Shown piece by piece: positions 4,860-22,343 of a DNA stretch of 64,000 nt. Source of the stretch: Klebsormidium nitens. Taxonomy: Eukaryota > Plantae > Klebsormidiophyceae. The stretch is taken from assembly GCA_000708835.1 (NCBI GenBank), contig DF237314.1, forward strand, positions 1 through 64,000, given 5' to 3'. A model generated the notes under the pieces. It saw only the letters and a program-made list of their open reading frames with translations, was not told the DNA's origin and did not search any database. The position numbers and the translations under genes were made by a program. Position 1 is the first letter of the stretch, and every line of letters begins with the position of its first letter.

Positions 4860-6734
4860 AAATCTAAAACACATGCCTTGCTCGTTCATCGTTCGGAACG
4901 GTCGGCCAATTTACACAACAGCTGCGTCTCTTGGGCGCTCCGGCTTTTACGTCCTTCTATCCGTCATCTTCCTTTTGACTTCATCGTTCCGACACACTGC
5001 CAGGGGACTTTATACCTGGCTGGCTGGCCGATGCTCTTGAAGTCAAGACGCCCCTGTAGAAACAGGGGATTGCAACTCCTCTTGAGCTGGGGGCTCCTGT
5101 TTTACTGGTGACACCTCAATAGGTTGTGGCGCCGCCTCCATCGTTTGGAGGGCCTTTCGACGGCCGGGCCCCAACGGTACACGGTCAAGGAGCCCCGCCA
5201 GCCTCCCTGCGACAAAGATTACATGCGACCTTTTGTCTAGAGAAGTGTTCATAGGAAGGAACATAGAATTGAAAGGGCCCCGGCTTTGAAGCATCTTCTG
5301 ACGTCAGGGTGCGTGAGCGGCAGACTGCCATTAAGTGGTTGGACGAGCCTTTTGTGCCGAGGAAGCTCCAAGTCTACATCCTCTTGCCAAACCGCGTGAT
5401 ACCACTTTCTTGCAACAAAGTCTGAAGCTTGCTTTCAGAAGACCGGCTGCGAACCGACGAGCTTTCACGGGATCCCTTGACGGTTGAGAGACGGAGAAAC
5501 AACACCGATTGCCACGCAAGAAAGTGACCCGGGCGGACATATATTGAACACCATAGCAATGTTTGTAACGGAAACATTTCAATTGCCGTTTGGACTACAA
5601 TTAGTAGAATGGCGACTCGGTTAGATTGGCCGATGACGTTCATTGACCAATTGATGTGGTGCGGATTCTCAGGTCCTGGACGCCTTTTCGCATACCTGGG
5701 TGGTGCTTCGTCCTATCACGGACGTACTTGTCCCGGCTCTATCCAATCTCGGGTACTGCCGCCTCGTGCTGCGTGGCACAACAAAAACACATCAGCATCA
5801 TTTGAGTGACCGCCGACTGAGGTTGTGTTCGTAGATTGTGTATGGACGTCGTTCACAAAGTGACTCGAATGGATGTCTATCAGGAAGTGGCTTGAAAGTA
5901 AAACTGACTTGATCCAATGGACGGCTACGATGAGGCAAACTGAAGCTTGAACGGCAAGCCAAAGACGTCGATGTTTCCAATTCAAAACCTGCATTGAGTA
6001 ATCGGGAGCCGCTCGAACATCAATGATGCTCTTGCAGCTCAGCTCAAACACTCCCCATCCGTGTGTAAAAAGAAGACCAGAGCACCAAGAATTGGAGGCC
6101 TCTCGCCTCGGGGTTTCTTTCGGCTCCATTTGCATCACTTCAATCTATGCGCCGCCGGCAAATTCGCTTAAAGCTATCGAGCTCACCTCCGCAGGTGACA
6201 TCCCGTGCCAGTGCCGGAACTTGCGCAAAGCCTTCTTTTCCTCGGGGTAAACACGTTCCACCGTTCAGATGCTACTCAAGACGTCCTGCAAATCACCAGG
6301 AAGATGATAAGAGTGAAGAGGGAAAAAAATGTTTCGACTCAGCAATCTTCGTTGGAGCTAAACGATGATATTCATTCCCAAACGCTCAGCCATTCCAGTG
6401 CGCTGTGACACATATCCATACCGAAACCCAAAAGCCTCGACCTTTTGCGACTCTAAAAGTCGAAACAATCCAGATAAAACGGACCAGGACACTCCGTTGA
6501 TTCCAATTTCAAATCCTGGGAAGATCGGGTATACTCACTAAGACAGCTTTTCTTATTCGGCAATGCTTAGACGCACAAACAAATCAGATCGCAGCGGCCG
6601 GACCTTGCACGCCTCCAGGTTGCGGTCCTTACTGAGAATGGGCTCGACGAGCTTGGTCACGGCGAGGTCCGAGTTGATGGTCGCGAATGCAGACAGAAGG
6701 CAGGCTCGGGTCGTTGGCCAGCACCTGGCGCAGC
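4860..6734 (-). pseudogene. Partial duplicate (last four exons) of the Popeye-domain gene
   Basis: Exon relics 6734-6604, 6285-6187, 5768-5696 and 5206-~4860 match exons 7-10 of the gene at 11657-18605 (TINSDLAVTKL; PEEKKALRKFRHWHG; HEAAVPEIG*; GRLAGLLDRVP). They contain in-frame TGA/TAG stops and frameshifts. No upstream exons are present in this copy. Confidence 0.8.
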
Positions 6735-7572
6735 CTGCAAAAGCACTTTTCGCTTCGTTAGATAACATCAATATGAGGCTGGACAAGTGAACGGGGATGT
6801 CCACAGCGGATCCCGTGTGACGCACTCGGCGATAGTATGAAACTCGCTTCTGCTCAGAAAGTCGTCTGTTGGAAGAAGGCAGGAAGCCTGAAAGGAAGGA
6901 GGTACGAGGAAGGACGTACAGCGATTCAGGTAACTTCAGAGCCCTTCCGATCCACATTTGCGGGTTTACCAACTTGTTGCAGCAACCTCTGCTTCACTTG
7001 CTCCAAATGGGGCAAGCCTGTTGATGAGCTCGAATCCAACAGTTCAAAATCCAGCGGACTTTGGCTACCGCAGGATACAAAGTCCTTCTCACTCCTGACA
7101 TGCGATAGGCAGATTAAATGCAGCAGGCGATGTGGAGGATATCCAGATAACAACACCAACGAAACAGCAGGAGGAAGGGTGCACCAAAGCCAGTCCGTAC
7201 TTGAAGGTATACCAGTGAAAGAGGCAGAATGCACGAGAGGCCAAATGTTACTATCCAATGTTTCTCTTTGAGTCTCGATTCTCTGTTTGAGTGCAATATT
7301 GTGAAGCTCGCTCAAGCCTTCTAACCCTGCCCCTGAGATAGCGCAATCTTTCTGGCAGGCGACCCGCAAGAATTCCAGCTTAGAAAATGCACGGCTTCTA
7401 GTGAGAGCGTAAGGACTGGCCGTGGTTTGGAAGAACCTGACCGAGAAAAAGTCTGTAAGAGAGTTTCTGACTTTCTTCCAGGGACGCTGCTCGTTCAGAT
7501 CTTCAGAATGCAACTCCTATCAACGGCTGCCCTGCCAGCAATCTACAGGGCAATGGTTGCATGCATCCCCAC

Positions 7573-10872: not shown

Positions 10873-11656
10873 TAAGAGCTGGCGGTATTCCAGATTCTCT
10901 CTGGCAAAGTGATTTGTACGAATTGGCATGGACTGTGTTGCTTGTCAGAAGATGATAGAGTACGTCAATAACTTAGCAACATTTGGAGTTCTATTGCTTC
11001 GACAGACCGAGTGTAGATACGACGAAGAGCCATATGCATTGACCTTCGTTGCATGGCGTGTATAGAACATCCTCAGGCTGCAGCGCACCTGAATGCACGC
11101 GGCCATCTAAAATTATGTTGTTATGTAGACATTGTTGGCCGGGCTAGCTGGTCATGCTAGTGGGGCAACTGTCCAGTAGTAGGTCCACTAACCCTTGCTT
11201 TTATGTTTGAAGTTTAATGGAAGGACCGAGCTAGTAGATTGCACTGACGTCCATCGTCCAATCATCACGTCGATCGTGCTCCAGATGAAATGCCTCCGAT
11301 CTCTGGCCGGCCTTACATTCAACCTACCAAATCCAGCCACACTGCATGGCCGAATCGATTCATGGCAAGGTGGCAACCGAATTGTACACTGCTGAAGTTC
11401 TCCATTGAGTTTCCAATACTTACAATGTATTCTACAACATCACCTGGTCATTGAACTGCGAAGTCAACAATCCCTTTTTAGATTGGGTTTGTACAACCCC
11501 GATCACCTGGCTTACAGAGTTCTGAATACAGGACTTAATACTTACGAGTACGCTATATATGTACAATTCGGAAACAAATGGACAAAACCTGCCATTAGCT
11601 CTATTTTAATCAGTACCCTAAGCGTGCGCTGTGCAACCCCCATAGCTGCTTCGACG

Positions 11657-14600
11657 TCAACTAAAGTTCAAATCAATCGCTCCTCGTTCGTCCTCGGGAA
11701 CTTCCAGCGTCGCATACAAGAGCTGCGTTTCCCGGGCCCCCAACACGGCTTCTACGTCCTTCTTTCTATCCGTCATTTTCGCTTTGACTTTATCGTCCAA
11801 ACACACCGCCAAGGGACTCAAATTCTGCAGGCTGGCCGCCTCTCCCTTGAGGCCCTTGCCTGGCGGAAGTTTCTCACGATTGAAATGAGGAGTTTGCGGC
11901 TCCAATTGCGGTTGAGTCTCTTGTTTGAGTACAGGCACGTCAGCGGGATGCGGACTCTGCTCCATTGTCTGGAGAGCTTTTCGACGGCCGGTCCACCGGG
12001 GCACACGGCTGAGAAGACCCGCTAGCCTCCCTGCGAATGGAAAGGCAAGTTGGTTCTAGACTTTGGACGCACGTACTGGGGATTGCGTAAGACCTGATAC
12101 CGGTGGACACTGCCCGTCGCACACTATCCCGCAACATCCTATCTAAATGCTACAGTCAATAAGGCATTGTACAGGACGGGTTTGGCCTCGGTTTCGTGCC
12201 GAGCTACCACACCGACTTCATACCACATGGTCGCCTCTTCTTGTATCGCAACCCTTGAAAGGGTTGGGCGAAATTACAGACAAGTATACGGCTTATAAGC
12301 AGGGAGTTTGTGCAAGATAGTTTGTGACGGACAGCGTCCACCGGTATCAGGTTGACGCAATCACCAGTACAAGAAGAGTCCGGACAACTTTTGGCAATTG
12401 TGCGCAAGAGTGCGCGTCTTGAGGTTTACTGAAAGTGAACTGGGTCAGTGCATGCCACAAGCATCCAAGAATATGGTACCAGAAGAGCAACGACCCAGCA
12501 AGCCGTCCAGTTCGCCGGTGTATTTACGATCGGCCGAGAAGGAGCGAGACGGAGCGTGACCAGTAACCCGACGCACTGAGCCCTTGGAAAAAAACCCTGT
12601 GCTTCTGGTTATCGCACAGATTACTTAAAGGGTAGCGAAAGCGATACGGCGATAACCATGACCACCCGAAAGGAGAGGGAAAACATGGCAGAGTGCTGGC
12701 ATACCTGAATGGTGCTTCGCCCCGTCGTCGTACTCGTCGAGTGTCCAACCAATCTCGCGGACCGCCGCCTCGTGCTGCAAGGACCAAATGCAGAGACCAT
12801 CAGGTTTCCACACAGCTGTCCACGATACCCATGCATGTTCAATACGAGATTCGGATCTGACCAGACCCAACCCGGCGGAACCGCCTCTTATTAAAGCCAA
12901 TACAGCACCCGCGGAAAGACTCTTTTCCGGCGATCCAAACCCCAAAAGAGTCCGAGTGCTGGGCTTGTTGTCAGCATGCTGAGGCGCAGCCCTGCCATCG
13001 GCTCTGGCTATTACCATCCAAACATCTGTAGGTGTGCTTGCAGGGCCTCGAGTAAGAACAGGAATCTTTTGCAATATGTACTGCCCGTGCTTTGGTTCCT
13101 CTGCTCATTCGAAATAAGAAATTTTTCTCTCAGAGGTTTCCTGATCACGGAAGTCTTCTGCCTAGTACGTTTATCTAGAGCCGGTGAAGCTCACCTCCGA
13201 AGGTCGAATTCCATGCCGCTGCCGGAACTCCCGCAGAGCCTTCTTCTCCTCGGGGCTGACGCGTCCCGCCGAGCAGATGCCGCCCAGCACGTCCTGCAAG
13301 CACCGTGCCCGCGATCAGCAATACTCCTATGAATTAGGTAGGATAGTTTCTAGGTAGGGTAGTAAGAGTCCCCGGCGAAAAGCAGAACTAAAAATCTAAA
13401 CCGACAAAAGTACCCGCTCCGCACCCTTACCCACCCTAACCCCAAAAGCAACCCCACCCGCTCGCCGGGCCGTGACCACACCTATCTAAAACTATCCTAC
13501 CGTATAGGTCTGTCTATCAGCAAGGCGGTGGGAGATTTGCGCAGACCTAAACACCAAACTTTTATACGACAATCAGCGGCCCAACGAGACTCGAAAAGAA
13601 TGCTAATCTTGTGTGCGTACGCTCGAATCTGAATACTTCCACTTCCCATGCATCCTCGTAAGGATCGGTACAAAGGCTTTGACATTTGAAATAGTAGACT
13701 GCGAACCAAACAAGACTGATCAGGCACACCTTATCTCCTGGAAACGTGTCCATGGACCTCTAGAGTGCATGGTACCGAAGACGCAGCAAACCGTCTCGTA
13801 TTACATACTCGGAGACAGTTCGCATATTTCTTCTATACCACGGAGGAAGGCGTGATTGATGCAGCGATGAGTAGGCAAGCAAACCAGTTGCCGCGGCCTG
13901 ACCTTGTACGTCTCCAGGCTGCGGTCCTTGCTGAGGTTGCGCTTGGCGAGCTTGGTGGCGAGGTCCGAGTTGATGGTTGCGGAAACGGACAGGATCAGGC
14001 TCGGGTCGTTGGCAAGCACCTGGCGCAACCTGCAGATACACTTTCCGCTCTTAGGCAGATAATGATTGAAATAAAGATTACACGAAAGCGGGCACGACGC
14101 AGACAAACTTCACCCATTTAGCAAGGTAACAGTCTTTTGAGGAGGGACACGAAGCTCGTTCTTAACCAAATAGCATTTATCCAAGAAGAAAGACGAGTCT
14201 CGATCAACCGACAGTCATCCGAGACTGGACACCATTCTCGCTAAGGTTCAGGAAGGAGACAATCGAGAACAAACACGGGAAGAGGGATTTCATAGCGATT
14301 TCCGTGAACCGCAGACTGAAGGTTTTACTGGTAAAGCTCCCGTTCGGAAAGCTGTATGTTGGAGGACGGACGTTCGATCCAGGTGACAACTACGAAGTTC
14401 GTGTCACGCACTTCGCGGTTTCACCAAATATGCACAGCCAATCACGAATGTGCGAAAACATCAGAAGCGGCATAAGCAGGCCTGCCAAATGAGCCTGGGC
14501 CCAGCCAAAGCTTTTTTCTATGCAGACTCGGGATAAAGGAACTCCGTTTTACGGGCTATTCCTGACGTGCCGCGGGCGTATGCAGCCGAAATACGACAGC

Positions 14601-17600
14601 AGAACAAACAACAAGCCACACCGAACAAAAAAAACAGACCTCAGACGGGAACAAGATATATTTCTTACTTGTGCTTATCCCAGACCACGACTTTGGTCGG
14701 CACCAGAGTCGTGACGGTGGCACCCGCCAGGTGCCCTTTCGCGAGGAGCGCCGTCTCGCCCACGAGGCTGCCCCGCTGGACCTGCCCCACCGCGCCGCCG
14801 TTCACTGTTACCTCCGCGCACCCGCTGCAGAGCGGAACCGGGATCAGCGAGAGGCAACGACTCTACAAAGGGAAAGCAACACACAGAGCGGAAACGGATT
14901 ACCGAAGTTTGATGACCTTCACCCCCGCGCACCCGCTGCAAAGCGGAAACGGAATCAGAAAGCGGAACGGTGTCACAGCGGAAACTATTTTACAGAGCGG
15001 AAACGGGGTTACAAAGGTAAATCGCCTTTACCTCCGAGCACCCGCTGCACGAGGTGGAAACGGAAGAATTGTGAGTCGGGTTTCCCTGGTGCAGGGCTGG
15101 CTTTCACGGTGATCCGAAAAGGCAGGCATGTACGCCTTTCAAATGGACAGAGCAGGCACGCTTTATCCAAAAAGGCAGGAAACTACGCTTTTGAAAAAGG
15201 CGGGCCGGAAACATTTCTAGAGGGGGGATACGTTTAGGCTGGATACGCACGGAAAGGGTAAAATGAAATCGTTAATCAGGGTCAGAGTTCTTTGTTTTCA
15301 GGCTGGGTGTTTACGGTCAGCCACAGGTGCGAGGCTTGACTAGTCCGAGAAGGCGAGCACGGTATACGGCCTTCGTATACGGCCTTCGGAGAGAGCACGG
15401 TATACGGCCTTCGTATACGGCCTTCGGAGAGAACAAATCAAAAGGGTGTTGTTCAGAAGCTAATTGAAAGCCTTGGCACGAAAAAAATAAAGCCGGAGTT
15501 CACCATGGAAGTGGACGTAGAAATGGAGAATGAATGATGCAGACTGAAGCACGAATATCTTTCGCTACAAAGGCCCTACAATCTGATCGTGACAACGAAA
15601 CCCCCGATGTGTATCAATCTCGCTGAGGCGAACCACTGAACGCACCAGCCAACGTCTGCATAAACACGGGACCGCAGGATCGTGCTCACCTAATGATGAG
15701 ATAGATGTCGTCTACTTGGTCACCCTGCTTCAGAATCTGCACAGCACCCAGAGTTCGAGGTGGCCCGTTCGCATGAGTCAGATCGACCGGACTAGACTCT
15801 GTGTGAAGTTCGGCACCTTGACGTGAATGCAACCACTTCCTTCAGACGGCGTGAGCTGTACGATTATCCAAAAGCTCTGAAAGACTGTGAATGGACGAGG
15901 TGTGATGCGTTCTGAAAGTGAGAAAACGATTCTCTTGGTCGGCCGAAACTTAGAAGAGTTCTCCTCCCTCCGCACATGGTTCATCAAGAAGGGGTGCAAA
16001 CGAGAAGTCTCGAGAAATAGTTGGATTGTGTGGCAATATTCACCTTGGTTCAATTGGATCCGAGCCCGAAAAAGTACTCCCTATGCACAATTGACTAATC
16101 CAGTCAAAACAGCTTTGCGAAACCAAGGATACCTATCATCACAATCAGGCCAATATGGATTCCTTGCTTTCATATCAAGGAGCGACATTGCCCGTCTTCG
16201 ACTTGGCACTGTTGATTTAATCGACAGAAAAAAAGACAAGCCAAACGATGGTGGCAGGTCATCGGCAAAACTTTACAAAGAAGTGCAACCCATCGTTCTC
16301 GATCCGCCTACCACGTGGTCTGTTGGCAGTTCTCGCCACTCCGCCTCTGCATAGCGCATCAGCTTTTTGAACTGGCAGGCCGTGACGCCGTGCCGCTGGA
16401 ACTCCAGCTCAAAAACGTCCAGCTCGTCCGAAGAGAACTCGACCTGCACCGGATGGAGCCTCGGTTGCGTTTTTCCCTTCTGAGTTCCAAGGTATTGTTT
16501 ATGCTTATGTTTACAACCCTAGAGCCTAAGCTTCTTGCGCACCAGCGAGAGTAAATTGGTGTCCAGATGTAATGGCTTAGGTCAGGCAGGGAATGGACTT
16601 CACGTCTGTTGACATTTTTACGTTTCTTCACAAGTTGCAAGCTTCTGAAGGACCCAAGTTGATTAGTCGTCCGTTTGCCACGTCTGGTTTGGCCTCAGAA
16701 TGCATCTTCAAAAGCTTTCACGGTTGGCGTGTCCCCTTAAGCGACTGCAGCAGTGTCCACTTGTTCATCAGGTTAGGTTCTTGTCTGTGACGCCTTTCGA
16801 ACTTGTTTACGAAGTATGGGGCGAAACTTCGACAAGCACCACATACAATATTCAAAATACTTGACTGACTTTCAAACAGGCAGTGAAGCAGCAAGAAGCC
16901 GTGTGTCCTAACAGGGCCTTTTCAAAGCTTCAATTATTTGCAGACCCTTCAATCGTGAGAACTTCGTGAAAGGAAATAAGTCCCATGACCAATTTTGTCA
17001 ACAGGCTTCTCTGGAGTAATGTGCAAAACCTCAAGACTTGGATAAGGAATAGAGTCCAGGAGAAAGGCTGACCTCGCGCCGTTCAAGGAGAAGGATGCCG
17101 ATCTGTGTGAGGTTGATGAGCAGGAAAACGCAGCCCCACATGCTGGGTATGTACATGGGCGTGGGTTGCAGCTGCAAACAAGCAGACTTACTCAATGGAG
17201 CTTAATGGCATTAGACTAGCTGACATGCACGCATGCATAAGATCTGTGCTGCCTCTCAGTATCCTTTAAGGGGCAATCCGATTAAACAAATTGAGATAGC
17301 TGAGCCAAACAGGATTGATAAAGTTTAAGAGCACATTTGGCAGTGGGAGTATACTGACGGACGCAGTAGTATGATCTGTACTGAAGCTAGGGCGGTGGAA
17401 GCGAGCGCGCTCGAATGTCAGGCTTACCATGTTGAAAGTGATCCCGCAGATGCCCCCGCAGACCATGAAACTCCTGAGGAACAGCATGTCCTGCAAAGCG
17501 CAGTTACATTGTCATCTGCTAGGTTCCTAGATTTGAAAGCCCATGCCACGTGTTCCTCCTAAATGCTTACCGTCACAACTCCCCATCAATGCCTCAATTT

Positions 17601-18605
17601 GAATGCAGACCTTGACTCCCTCAGCATTTCAATCATCTTCAGTCATTATTGACCAACCGTACTAAGTAAGTTCCTTCATGACTTTCGATTTGAGGGAAAG
17701 AGGGTGCATATGAGAGGGGCTGGAGGCACCATCGTTGCACGCAAACAATTCCTTCTTAACTGCCCCAACAAATGTAATCAATGAAGCAGTCACGGAAGAT
17801 TACCTACCTTCATAAACAGTGCGATAACTCCAAACAGACTCGCAAGGTGGCCCAAGCCAAGCAGTTGATTGCGCGTCAGTGAAGCGCGCAGCCATCCTAG
17901 GAAAGACGTTTGTTTCTTCTCGCCCCCACTCTTTGCTTGTTCGGTGGCGCCGCAGACTGCTTGTGCTAGAGTAGGATCCAGTTGGGGGTTTACACCCACA
18001 GATGTGACAGGACTAATGGGACGGGCCGCGTGGTGCTCAAGAAAGGGGGGGGGCTGTTCAGAGTAAGGTCTTATTTGCTGGAAGCCGGGAGCCACATATA
18101 GAAGGGGGTTATGTACCGCTGATTGGCTGCCCTCTGGTTTTATTCTAGTCTCAAGTGCATTTGGTGCAAAGAAGTTTCCTATTTGTGAGAGGGGTTTGGT
18201 TGTATTGGTGGGAGCAGGGTAACTTTGCAGATATCCAAATGTGACCAAGAGCTTGGCGTTGGATGATAGCTGATGCTGGTCCTTCGTGAAACCCCCAAAC
18301 ACAGGCTTGCTGGCACCAAAACCACCTCCTGAAGCCGGCTGTTTTACAGTCATTAGGGGGGTACCACACGGAGGCCTCGCAGGCTGCTCTGATTCAACCC
18401 CATGTTTTATAGCACTTGTCTGGGGCAAAGCAAAAGCTGAAAGTCTAGGAGGGGCCTGACCACTCAACCGCAAACACGCAGATTGCCTGACGGTACTACC
18501 ACAAAGCTGTGGGCACAATGCTGTCAGCTCCTGTGGAGCATGGACTGCAATGTCAGGGACTCTGCGCACGGCCTTTGCAATCTGGAAAGCCCACATTGCA
18601 TGCAT
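11657..18605 (-). CDS. Popeye-domain-like membrane protein (3 TM + cyclic-nucleotide-binding-like domain + C-terminal helical domain), ~654 aa, 10 exons
   Basis: Phase-consistent exons 18605-17808, 17490-17428, 17171-17073, 16443-16312, 15676-15630, 14824-14669, 14029-13903, 13293-13195, 12774-12705, 12030-11657, all GT-AG. Spliced core: LGHLASLFGVIALFMK|DMLFLRSFMVCGGICGITFNM|LQPTPMYIPSMWGCVFLLINLTQIGILLLERRE|VEFSSDELDVFELEFQRHGVTACQFKKLMRYAEAEWRELPTDHV|ILKQGDQVDDIYLIIS|GCAEVTVNGGAVGQVQRGSLVGETALLAKGHLAGATVTTLVPTKVVVWDKHK|LRQVLANDPSLILSVSATINSDLATKL. Start ATG (18605 or 18596) is uncertain. Confidence 0.85.
13337..13502. mobile_element. MITE-like non-autonomous DNA transposon with imperfect TIRs, TA-flanked
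   Basis: Left end GGTAGGATAGTTTCTAGGTAGG...CCCCGGCGA is the imperfect inverse of right end TCGCCGGG...CCTATCTAAAACTATCCTACC. TA lies at 13335-36 and 13503-04. The element is absent from the homologous intron of duplication unit 1 (6286-6603). Confidence 0.7.
14810..15065. repeat. Three ~110-bp imperfect repeats spanning the intron 5 / exon 6 junction of the Popeye gene
   Basis: acc(t/c)ccg(c/a)gcacccgctgca..(g)cggaaac at ~14810, ~14921 and ~15030, with additional internal agcggaaac motifs. Confidence 0.85.
15355..15430. repeat. Hierarchical tandem repeat: 2 x 38 bp, each containing 2 x gtatacggccttc
   Basis: gagcacggtatacggccttcgtatacggccttcggaga occurs twice exactly. Confidence 0.95.
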
Positions 18606-19104
18606 CTTGCTTTTTACCAAATTTGGGGCAGACGCCTTGTCCTCAGTCCGTCCTTCTAAATTCAGAAATCTGGCTCCTATCTGCATCTGGCCGAAGTGCT
18701 CTAAGCTGAAGATCCATAAACCTCCAAGCATGAGCAAAGCAGGCTCCTTCCTCTTCATTCAGATCTGCTGTTGCAGCTTCCTACACCTTAATCAGGCAGG
18801 AGAACGACAGGAACGCGGCTATTGAATCTTCCAAGTTAAACAGCAACAAAGTGTGTTGCAATTGCCTCCCTGCCCGGTTGGCCATGGCGCCTTCAAGTTC
18901 GTGATGGACGCCATGGATGCAAGTGGCCGAGTGACTCGGGTCTGGTTCGTTCTTCTTCCTTCTCAAGTTGCATTTAGTTGTCGACGATTGTCGCTGTAGC
19001 CGTCCAATCTATACAAAGTACATCATCGAACGGCTCAGAGTCACATGTATCAAATGCTTGCACTGTATCAGATCAGCTGGTTTAAAAGTTCTCAGGATTG
19101 AAAA

Positions 19105-19113
19105 TTAGGGTTT
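19105..19113. promoter_or_regulatory. Telo-box (AAACCCTAA, reverse strand) in the Popeye/panC divergent promoter
   Basis: TTAGGGTTT ~180 bp upstream of the panC ATG. Function is inferred from plant promoter knowledge only, and a 9-mer can arise by chance. Confidence 0.35.
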
Positions 19114-19290
19114 GCAACAAGGGCGCTGGTGGGCAAAGCGGGGGCAAAGCTTCAAAAGGAGGTGAAAAAGAATCCAGTCTCCAGAAGTTACTGCTCGCAG
19201 CTCGTTATTAGATTGTTGCTTTAGCCAATCCGCGCAGCGGCCTTTCTGAAAGCTGCAAGCTTAGGCTGAGGCTGGATTTTCATTGCAACC

Positions 19291-22343
<3,053 letters not shown>

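Follow-up and report, generated by a model that had tools for sequence, protein, structure and literature searches.

A Popeye-Type Membrane Protein in the Alga Klebsormidium nitens and Its Possible Role as a Ligand Sensor

Introduction

Do the algal relatives of land plants carry a member of the Popeye family, and if so, what might it do? The animal Popeye proteins (POPDC) are membrane proteins in which binding of cyclic AMP (cAMP) to the Popeye domain changes the interaction with the channel TREK-1 and other partners (PMC8706714). A review of the family reports no evidence for it in plants or fungi (PMC4918794). The question is raised by a gene on the minus strand of contig DF237314.1 of Klebsormidium nitens (assembly GCA_000708835.1), positions 1 to 64,000 of which form the window, the whole stretch of 64,000 nucleotides analysed here. 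An initial annotation, made from the letters of the window, had joined ten exons into a Popeye-like protein with a domain resembling the cyclic-nucleotide-binding (CNB) fold.

Results

Gene Structure and Transcripts

In the six-frame translation of positions 11000-19500, combined with splice-site mapping, ten minus-strand exons (18605 -> 11657) join in phase into 1965 nt, that is, 654 codons and a stop (Table 1). All nine introns are GT..AG. The exons lie where the initial annotation had placed them, the frame is open throughout, and each of the motifs quoted from it is present (LGHLA...ALFMK-DMLFLRS, W..VFLLIN, FQRHGVT..QFKKL, ILKQGD...IYLIISG.AEV, VGETALL..AGATV and KLRQVL..DPSL..NSDLATKL).

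The sequencing-run index contains 20 runs of 7 studies with part of the window, and Logan contigs from four of these runs, each from a different study, were placed on 12700-18699. Transcripts of the gene are assembled in all four, and nothing links the gene to zoospores, the cells that the initial annotation had singled out for localisation. Introns 1-8 are spliced out at exactly the predicted junctions in every run, with CT..AC ends on the plus strand. At intron 9, the loose end of a contig at 12704 runs on into the letters of 12001-12030. Each of the nine proposed introns is therefore backed by contigs, and a single contig of 2547 nt covers the whole mRNA. Lower-depth contigs enter or cross intron 4 (15737-16311) in the same four runs, for example at 15708-16341. 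A transcript form that retains this intron exists; it would terminate a few codons past exon 4, before the beta roll.

The start codon is at 18605. A 15-kb Logan contig from a Klebsormidium-like genome, L001, is syntenic with this locus and has the same ten exons, and its protein opens identically (MHAMWAF). An in-frame upstream ATG at 18758 was considered as the start and ruled out. Because L001 shares MHAMWAF while the region matching the 18758 ATG carries stops, translation is assigned to 18605. The 5' leader contains an upstream open reading frame, and the leader around the ATG of this frame is partly conserved in L001.

The gene is already public as KFL_003650040, a "hypothetical protein" of 390 aa with the same two Pfam matches described below. 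This protein (P0012 in the searches) and aa 265-654 of the model agree in every residue (100% identity). It begins at M265, in the Met-Lys that ends exon 1, so that residues 1-264 are missing and, with them, helix 1 of the three membrane helices. The public model needs correction, since the omitted part of exon 1 is supported both by transcripts and by the related genome. In the library searched, neither the gene identifiers nor PF04831, nor Popeye combined with algae or plants, led to a paper on such proteins.

Table 1. Features of the Popeye-type gene, in the order of transcription; positions are those of the window.
Feature	Position	Strand	Extent	Content	Evidence
5' leader	18606..18929	-	at least 230 nt beyond 18699		mRNA contig
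Upstream open reading frame in 5' leader	18819-18914 (18914 -> 18819)	-	31 codons		translation
Exon 1	17808..18605	-	aa 1-266	start codon 18605, N-terminal extension of ~247 aa, membrane helix 1	contig junction 17807/17808
Membrane helix 1	17811-17864	-	about aa 248-265		hydropathy
Exon 2	17428..17490	-	aa 267-287	membrane helix 2	hydropathy; transcript junctions; AlphaFold helix 2-23 (model numbering)
Exon 3	17073..17171	-	aa 288-320	membrane helix 3, ERRE at end	AlphaFold helix 30-54; transcript junctions; 100% identical in L001
Exon 4	16312..16443	-	aa 321-364	N-terminal helices of the Popeye/CNB domain (FQRHGVT..QFKKLM) and first strand	transcript junctions; 100% identical in L001
Exon 5	15690..15736	-	aa 365-380, last codon split	beta-roll strands ILKQGD...IYLII	transcript junctions
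Exon 6	14669..14824	-	aa 380-432	remaining beta roll including the phosphate-binding cassette	transcript junctions; 100% identical in L001
Phosphate-binding cassette	14713..14760	-	aa 402-417	GETALLAKGHLAGATV	HMMER alignment to PKG and PKA cassettes; family alignment
Exon 7	13903..14029	-	aa 432-474	hinge and lid helices (KLRQVL..NSDLATKL), start of C-terminal helical module	AlphaFold helices 166-175, 177-197; transcript junctions
Exon 8	13195..13293	-	aa 475-507	core of the ENT-like four-helix module (EEKKALREFR)	transcript junctions
Exon 9	12705..12774	-	aa 508-531, last codon split	end of the ENT-like module (GWTLDEYDDG)	junction 12774/13195; loose end 12704
Exon 10	11657..12030	-	aa 531-654 and stop codon	variable C-terminal tail	loose end matching 12001-12030; identical to KFL_003650040 C-terminus

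Family Membership and Relatives

The protein passes two Pfam profiles, PF04831 (POPDC1-3, gathering cut-off 28.1 bits) and PF00027 (cNMP_binding, 27.5 bits). The scores were obtained with P0012, thus without helix 1. PF04831 matches at 55.7 bits (E 7.8e-15) over profile positions 25-136 of 140, a range that includes the membrane-helix part, and PF00027 matches at 57.4 bits (E 1.5e-15) over positions 2-89 of 89. Taken singly, exon 4 matches PF04831 (E 0.0018) and exon 6 matches PF00027 (E 4.6e-5). NCBIfam gives generic CNB matches only, below cut-off, and sequence searches of the PDB with exon 4 or exon 6 alone return nothing useful.

A phmmer search with exon 6 (51 aa) over 1.84 billion representatives gives eight hits, among them three full-length relatives; the Chara protein is missed. 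Further relatives come from two profile word searches, which recover Chara and K. nitens and do not recover the haptophyte and diatom proteins described below. The five relatives are CBR_g21134 of Chara braunii, two genes of Spirogloea muscicola (SM000247S08292 and SM000302S11671), ME000208S02908 of Mesotaenium endlicherianum and a 512-aa protein from six transcriptome runs of one organism. All five are above the cut-offs of both profiles, with PF04831 scores of 29-73 bits. Across the whole region that starts with helix 1 and closes with the helical module, they are collinear with the K. nitens protein and 42-49% identical to it; the cassette and the order of parts are shared as well. Their N-terminal extensions and tails have no sequence kinship to those of K. 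nitens. The Chara model is without part of the C-terminal module, and the Mesotaenium model and one Spirogloea model are without helix segments; these are probably annotation gaps.

Among the matches found, close relatives are restricted to streptophyte algae. The exon-6 phmmer search and the two profile word searches, which could exclude close orthologues only, contain no land-plant, chlorophyte, bacterial or archaeal protein. The statement on absence is limited to close land-plant orthologues, since these searches missed either Chara or the haptophyte and diatom relatives; within that limit, it agrees with the proposal that this is not a described land-plant family. A scan of 185,579 species genomes with two family-specific peptide patterns finds no bacterial or archaeal relative.

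More distant neighbours appear when language-model features are compared in the ESM Atlas. The core of one relative (P0008) adjoins haptophyte and diatom POPDC1-3 clusters (0.91-0.95), and chordate POPDC2 follows at 0.86. The initial annotation had described the family as known mainly from animals, with bacterial homologues. Popeye membership stands, and the family is more widespread among algae than this description implied, as haptophyte and diatom POPDC1-3 proteins are present in databases. The streptophyte-algal proteins form a distinct algal variant of the Popeye family.

Two JGI metagenome contigs of 33 and 24 kb (P0002 and P0013) carry open reading frames the size of exon 6 that are ~94% identical to exon 6 of the window, so close relatives of the alga are present in those environmental samples.

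Membrane Helices and Predicted Fold

The three hydrophobic segments that had been proposed appear in the Kyte-Doolittle profile, roughly at aa 248-265, 268-288 and 297-317. Only Lys-Asp lies between helices 1 and 2. The three segments are conserved in all relatives.

The AlphaFold model of P0012:1-275 has a mean predicted local distance difference test score (pLDDT) of 78, with values of 85-94 in the roll. In this model, two long membrane helices (helices 2 and 3) are followed by two short helices, an eight-stranded roll, the hinge and lid helices and four more helices. A CNB-fold domain is thus predicted directly behind the membrane helices, as had been suggested, and structure comparisons point the same way. 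Foldseek matches the model to CRP/CAP, KCNH, PKA-R and PKG structures in the PDB at probability 1.0. With VIA-align, Z is 15-18 across HCN, CRP and PKA domains, with 18.1 to 3mdp (root-mean-square deviation 2.2, 132 residues) and 16-17 to HCN2/HCN4. The VIA-align neighbours also include the PycTIR domain bound to cyclic UMP (cUMP; Z 17.5), FNR and CLP, which binds cyclic di-GMP (c-di-GMP). Solved POPDC structures are not among the best 50 of each PDB structure-match list.

In the ESM Atlas, comparison by shape matches the model to a haptophyte POPDC1-3 and cNMP cluster (template modelling score, TM, 0.64, with 218 residues aligned). Other matches are bacterial clusters under the name "Popeye protein conserved region" (TM 0.60 by query, 0.67 by target) and an arthropod POPDC1-3 cluster (TM 0.52, 169 residues aligned).

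Phosphate-Binding Cassette

In the family profile, the cassette aligns with those of PKG and PKA with Gly402-Glu403 retained and a one-residue insertion. Ala413 occupies the position of the phosphate-clamping Arg, and Gly414 that of the Ser/Thr. The canonical Arg and Ser/Thr are missing from all six family members, which share the pattern GE[TS]ALL.KGH.AG[HA]TV; His411 is kept in all six. Among Klebsormidium, Chara and the Zygnematophyceae, the cassette hardly varies.

Neither the protein nor any of the aligned relatives contains DSPE or FQVT, the motifs through which animal POPDC1 binds cAMP (PMC4918794, PMC8706714). The alignments therefore bear out the proposal that the cassette lacks both the canonical Arg and the animal motifs. 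Animal POPDC itself binds cAMP without the canonical Arg (PMC8706714). Judged from the aligned residues, the algal cassette is nearer to the canonical form than the animal one is, yet it is without the canonical clamp. Since the Arg, the Ser/Thr and DSPE/FQVT are all missing, the cassette does not by itself specify the ligand.

Selection and the N-Terminal Extension

Between the window and L001, exons 2-9 differ by 56 synonymous and 4 non-synonymous changes, with a synonymous rate (dS) of 0.38, a non-synonymous rate (dN) of 0.007 and a dN/dS of 0.018 (Nei-Gojobori). Exon 6 has no non-synonymous change between these two Klebsormidium-like genomes. The ratio is 0.12 in the last 50 codons of exon 1, which contain helix 1, 0.28 in the C-terminal tail (exon 10) and 0.59 in the first 207 codons. 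Strong purifying selection acts on the helices, the domain and the helical module, and not on the N-terminal extension.

A word search with exon 1 gives a single protein match, at 60% identity, which is exon 1 of L001; full-length proteins were outside the length range searched. The extension of ~247 aa before helix 1 has 5% acidic residues, a net positive charge and one N-x-S/T sequon. In the relatives, 160-256 residues precede helix 1. These are mutually unrelated in sequence, ~5% acidic, net positive and rich in Ser, Thr, Ala and Pro. In composition, the extension resembles an organelle transit peptide, and the working membrane may be that of a plastid or mitochondrion and not the plasma membrane.

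C-Terminal Helical Module

The region of aa 462-536 is highly conserved (EK[RK]ALRE[YF]R ... GW[TS]..E[FY][ED]DG) and, folded alone, is predicted as four helices with a pLDDT of 81. In Foldseek, it matches the ENT domain of EMSY at probability 0.99 (25% identity, TM 0.63, E 0.13), and a Trypanosoma brucei ENT domain is also among its best solved matches. Against the Atlas, it matches ENT/TerB clusters at TM 0.63-0.83. An ENT-like module is also found inside a haptophyte POPDC1-3 cluster, at TM 0.81. Pfam ENT (PF03735) and TerB have no match in P0012 at E values up to 1. ENT is a dimerisation module. For this reason, dimerisation or partner binding is a reasonable role to infer for the algal module.

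Discussion

Proposed Mechanism

The gene is transcribed, constrained and a member of two Pfam families, and its product has a predicted CNB fold. On these observations, the 654-aa K. nitens protein can be read as a membrane-anchored Popeye-type ligand sensor, a reading whose functional part we infer and to which we give slightly better than even chances. Its parts, from the N-terminus on, are a positively charged and poorly conserved extension, three close membrane helices, the CNB-fold domain, the ENT/TerB-like module of four helices and, last, a variable tail. The mechanism is drawn from animal POPDC: such a protein would be neither enzyme nor channel and would act as a membrane-anchored sensor. 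A small ligand would bind in the beta roll. This would most likely be a cyclic nucleotide held through non-canonical contacts, with the retained Gly-Glu and the conserved His replacing the missing Arg clamp. Binding would shift the lid helix, which is continuous with the ENT-like module in the proposal, and the movement would alter how the protein dimerises or how it binds another membrane protein as its partner.

Several points weigh against this reading. The cassette lacks the Arg and Ser/Thr, as do CNB-homology domains that bind no nucleotide, and it also lacks the DSPE/FQVT motifs through which animal POPDC binds cAMP. The long N-terminus is unlike the short, glycosylated N-terminus of animal POPDC. 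Orthology to animal POPDC is suggested by profile and fold similarity, and the ENT match falls short of significance in Foldseek and is without Pfam support. The transit-peptide idea has amino-acid composition as its whole basis. Ligand binding, the partner and the location are all predictions, and cyclic-nucleotide sensing in particular would be an extrapolation from the animal proteins.

Alternative Readings

A different function would follow if the roll were a CNB-homology domain of the KCNH kind, which binds no free ligand. In that case, the protein would form a constitutive scaffold or dimer in the membrane, and either residues of its own or a partner would occupy the conserved pocket. 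The loss of the canonical Arg and Ser/Thr throughout the family is in keeping with this, as is the presence of KCNH CNB-homology domains among the good structural matches. A near-invariant Gly-Glu and remaining cassette, together with an exon 6 free of non-synonymous change, fit a working pocket instead, and the missing Arg does not prevent cAMP binding in animal POPDC (PMC8706714). A scaffold without ligand is possible, though well short of even chances. The ligand, if there is one, could be neither cAMP nor cGMP but another small molecule. In CRP/FNR-type and PycTIR proteins, the same fold is also used for effectors such as heme, Fe-S, cUMP and c-di-GMP. PycTIR, FNR and CLP are indeed among the structural neighbours, and the KGH.AG[HA]TV cassette with its conserved His residues is unlike both the canonical and the animal POPDC forms. 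Fold neighbours, however, do not reveal the ligand, and the Gly-Glu pair, which contacts the ribose in cAMP and cGMP binders, is kept; a ligand of another kind seems unlikely.

Kinship with Popeye proteins might also be apparent only, had short membrane helices been fused independently to an ordinary bacterial-type CNB domain, so that the PF04831 match reflected general CNB similarity. The PF00027 score is as high as that of PF04831, the cassette has a more canonical look than its animal counterpart, and the model is matched at TM 0.58-0.67 by bacterial clusters in which CNB proteins are anchored to the membrane. Yet the PF04831 match takes in the membrane-helix portion of the profile, and scores within the family reach 55-73 bits. 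Of the two profiles, PF04831 is the one favoured by exon 4 on its own. The alignment with the arthropod POPDC cluster spans 169 residues, and the two peptide patterns find no bacterial or archaeal relative in the one scan of 185,579 species genomes. An independent fusion is accordingly considered quite improbable. The remaining concern, that the gene is a pseudogene or an artefact of assembly or annotation, could draw on the shortened public model and on a degraded partial copy 5 kb away. It is refuted by the frame open across ten exons, the full-length spliced mRNA in four independent studies and the core dN/dS of 0.018, and its probability is negligible.

Comparison with Known Systems

The sensor reading relies on the likeness to animal POPDC1/BVES, POPDC2 and POPDC3, in which three membrane helices are likewise followed directly by the CNB-fold domain. 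The algal protein and the animal proteins pass the POPDC1-3 profile, have no enzymatic or pore domain, lack the canonical cassette Arg and end in a variable tail. They differ in the algal cassette, which is canonical-like (GE.ALL...ATV) and without DSPE/FQVT, in the additional PF00027 match, in the 247-aa N-terminal extension and in the ENT/TerB-like four-helix module after the lid helix. In the animal proteins, cAMP binding and channel partners are known, whereas the algal protein is compared by sequence and predicted fold.

The haptophyte and diatom POPDC1-3 clusters, which are database entries and uncharacterised, are nearest to the algal family by features and by shape. They are nevertheless distant and are missed by word-based profile searches, so that features and shape are the basis of this comparison. 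Canonical CNB domains (CRP/CAP, PKA-R, PKG, HCN/CNG and KCNH) share the fold, the PF00027 match and the cassette Gly-Glu. They differ by having Arg and Ser/Thr where the algal proteins have Ala and Gly, and by lacking the one-residue insertion. They also sit with a kinase, channel or DNA-binding domain, whereas the algal domain is anchored by three short membrane helices. EMSY ENT and TerB modules share the four-helix arrangement with the C-terminal module; the algal setting would be membrane-proximal and not nuclear chromatin.

Significance

The Popeye family is present, expressed and constrained in the algal lineages closest to land plants, which fills the gap in its distribution stated for plants. 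The sperm-linked cyclase CAPE is absent from the Klebsormidiaceae and the Zygnematophyceae (PMC8115329). The gene itself is present in Klebsormidium and in Zygnematophyceae and is thus distributed independently of the CAPE/PKA cAMP module linked to sperm. For research on cAMP in plants and algae, the protein is a candidate membrane effector besides PKA and CNB-bearing channels, in lineages that lack CAPE. For research on POPDC, its cassette is a natural intermediate between the canonical and animal forms and could help to explain how Popeye domains bind ligands and pass on the signal.

A broader scenario can be offered as a speculation, and as a whole we regard it as unlikely. Streptophyte algae (Klebsormidium, Chara and Zygnematophyceae) would keep an ancestral form of the Popeye protein with a near-canonical cassette. 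At an organelle membrane, it would sense a cyclic nucleotide or some related small ligand and signal by way of an ENT-like dimerisation module, and it would have been lost at the origin of land plants.

Other Features of the Locus

A degraded partial duplicate of exons 7-10 is located at 4953-6736 on the minus strand, ~5 kb downstream of the gene, with 52-92% amino-acid identity depending on the piece. The copies of exons 8, 9 and 10 contain in-frame stops, and no copies of exons 1-6 were found.

Through a 111-bp tandem repeat at 14808-15065 (2.3 copies, 75% matches), the exon 6 acceptor and the first 17 nt of the exon are copied into intron 5. As a result, two decoy acceptor-like sites lie upstream of the acceptor used by the transcripts. 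Intron 5 also contains a perfect 38-bp tandem repeat at 15355-15432 (2.1 copies), made of 13-bp units.

On the plus strand, a gene for pantoate-beta-alanine ligase (PanC) lies from 19282 onward, head to head with the Popeye-type gene. The same arrangement is found in L001 (5733-8079).

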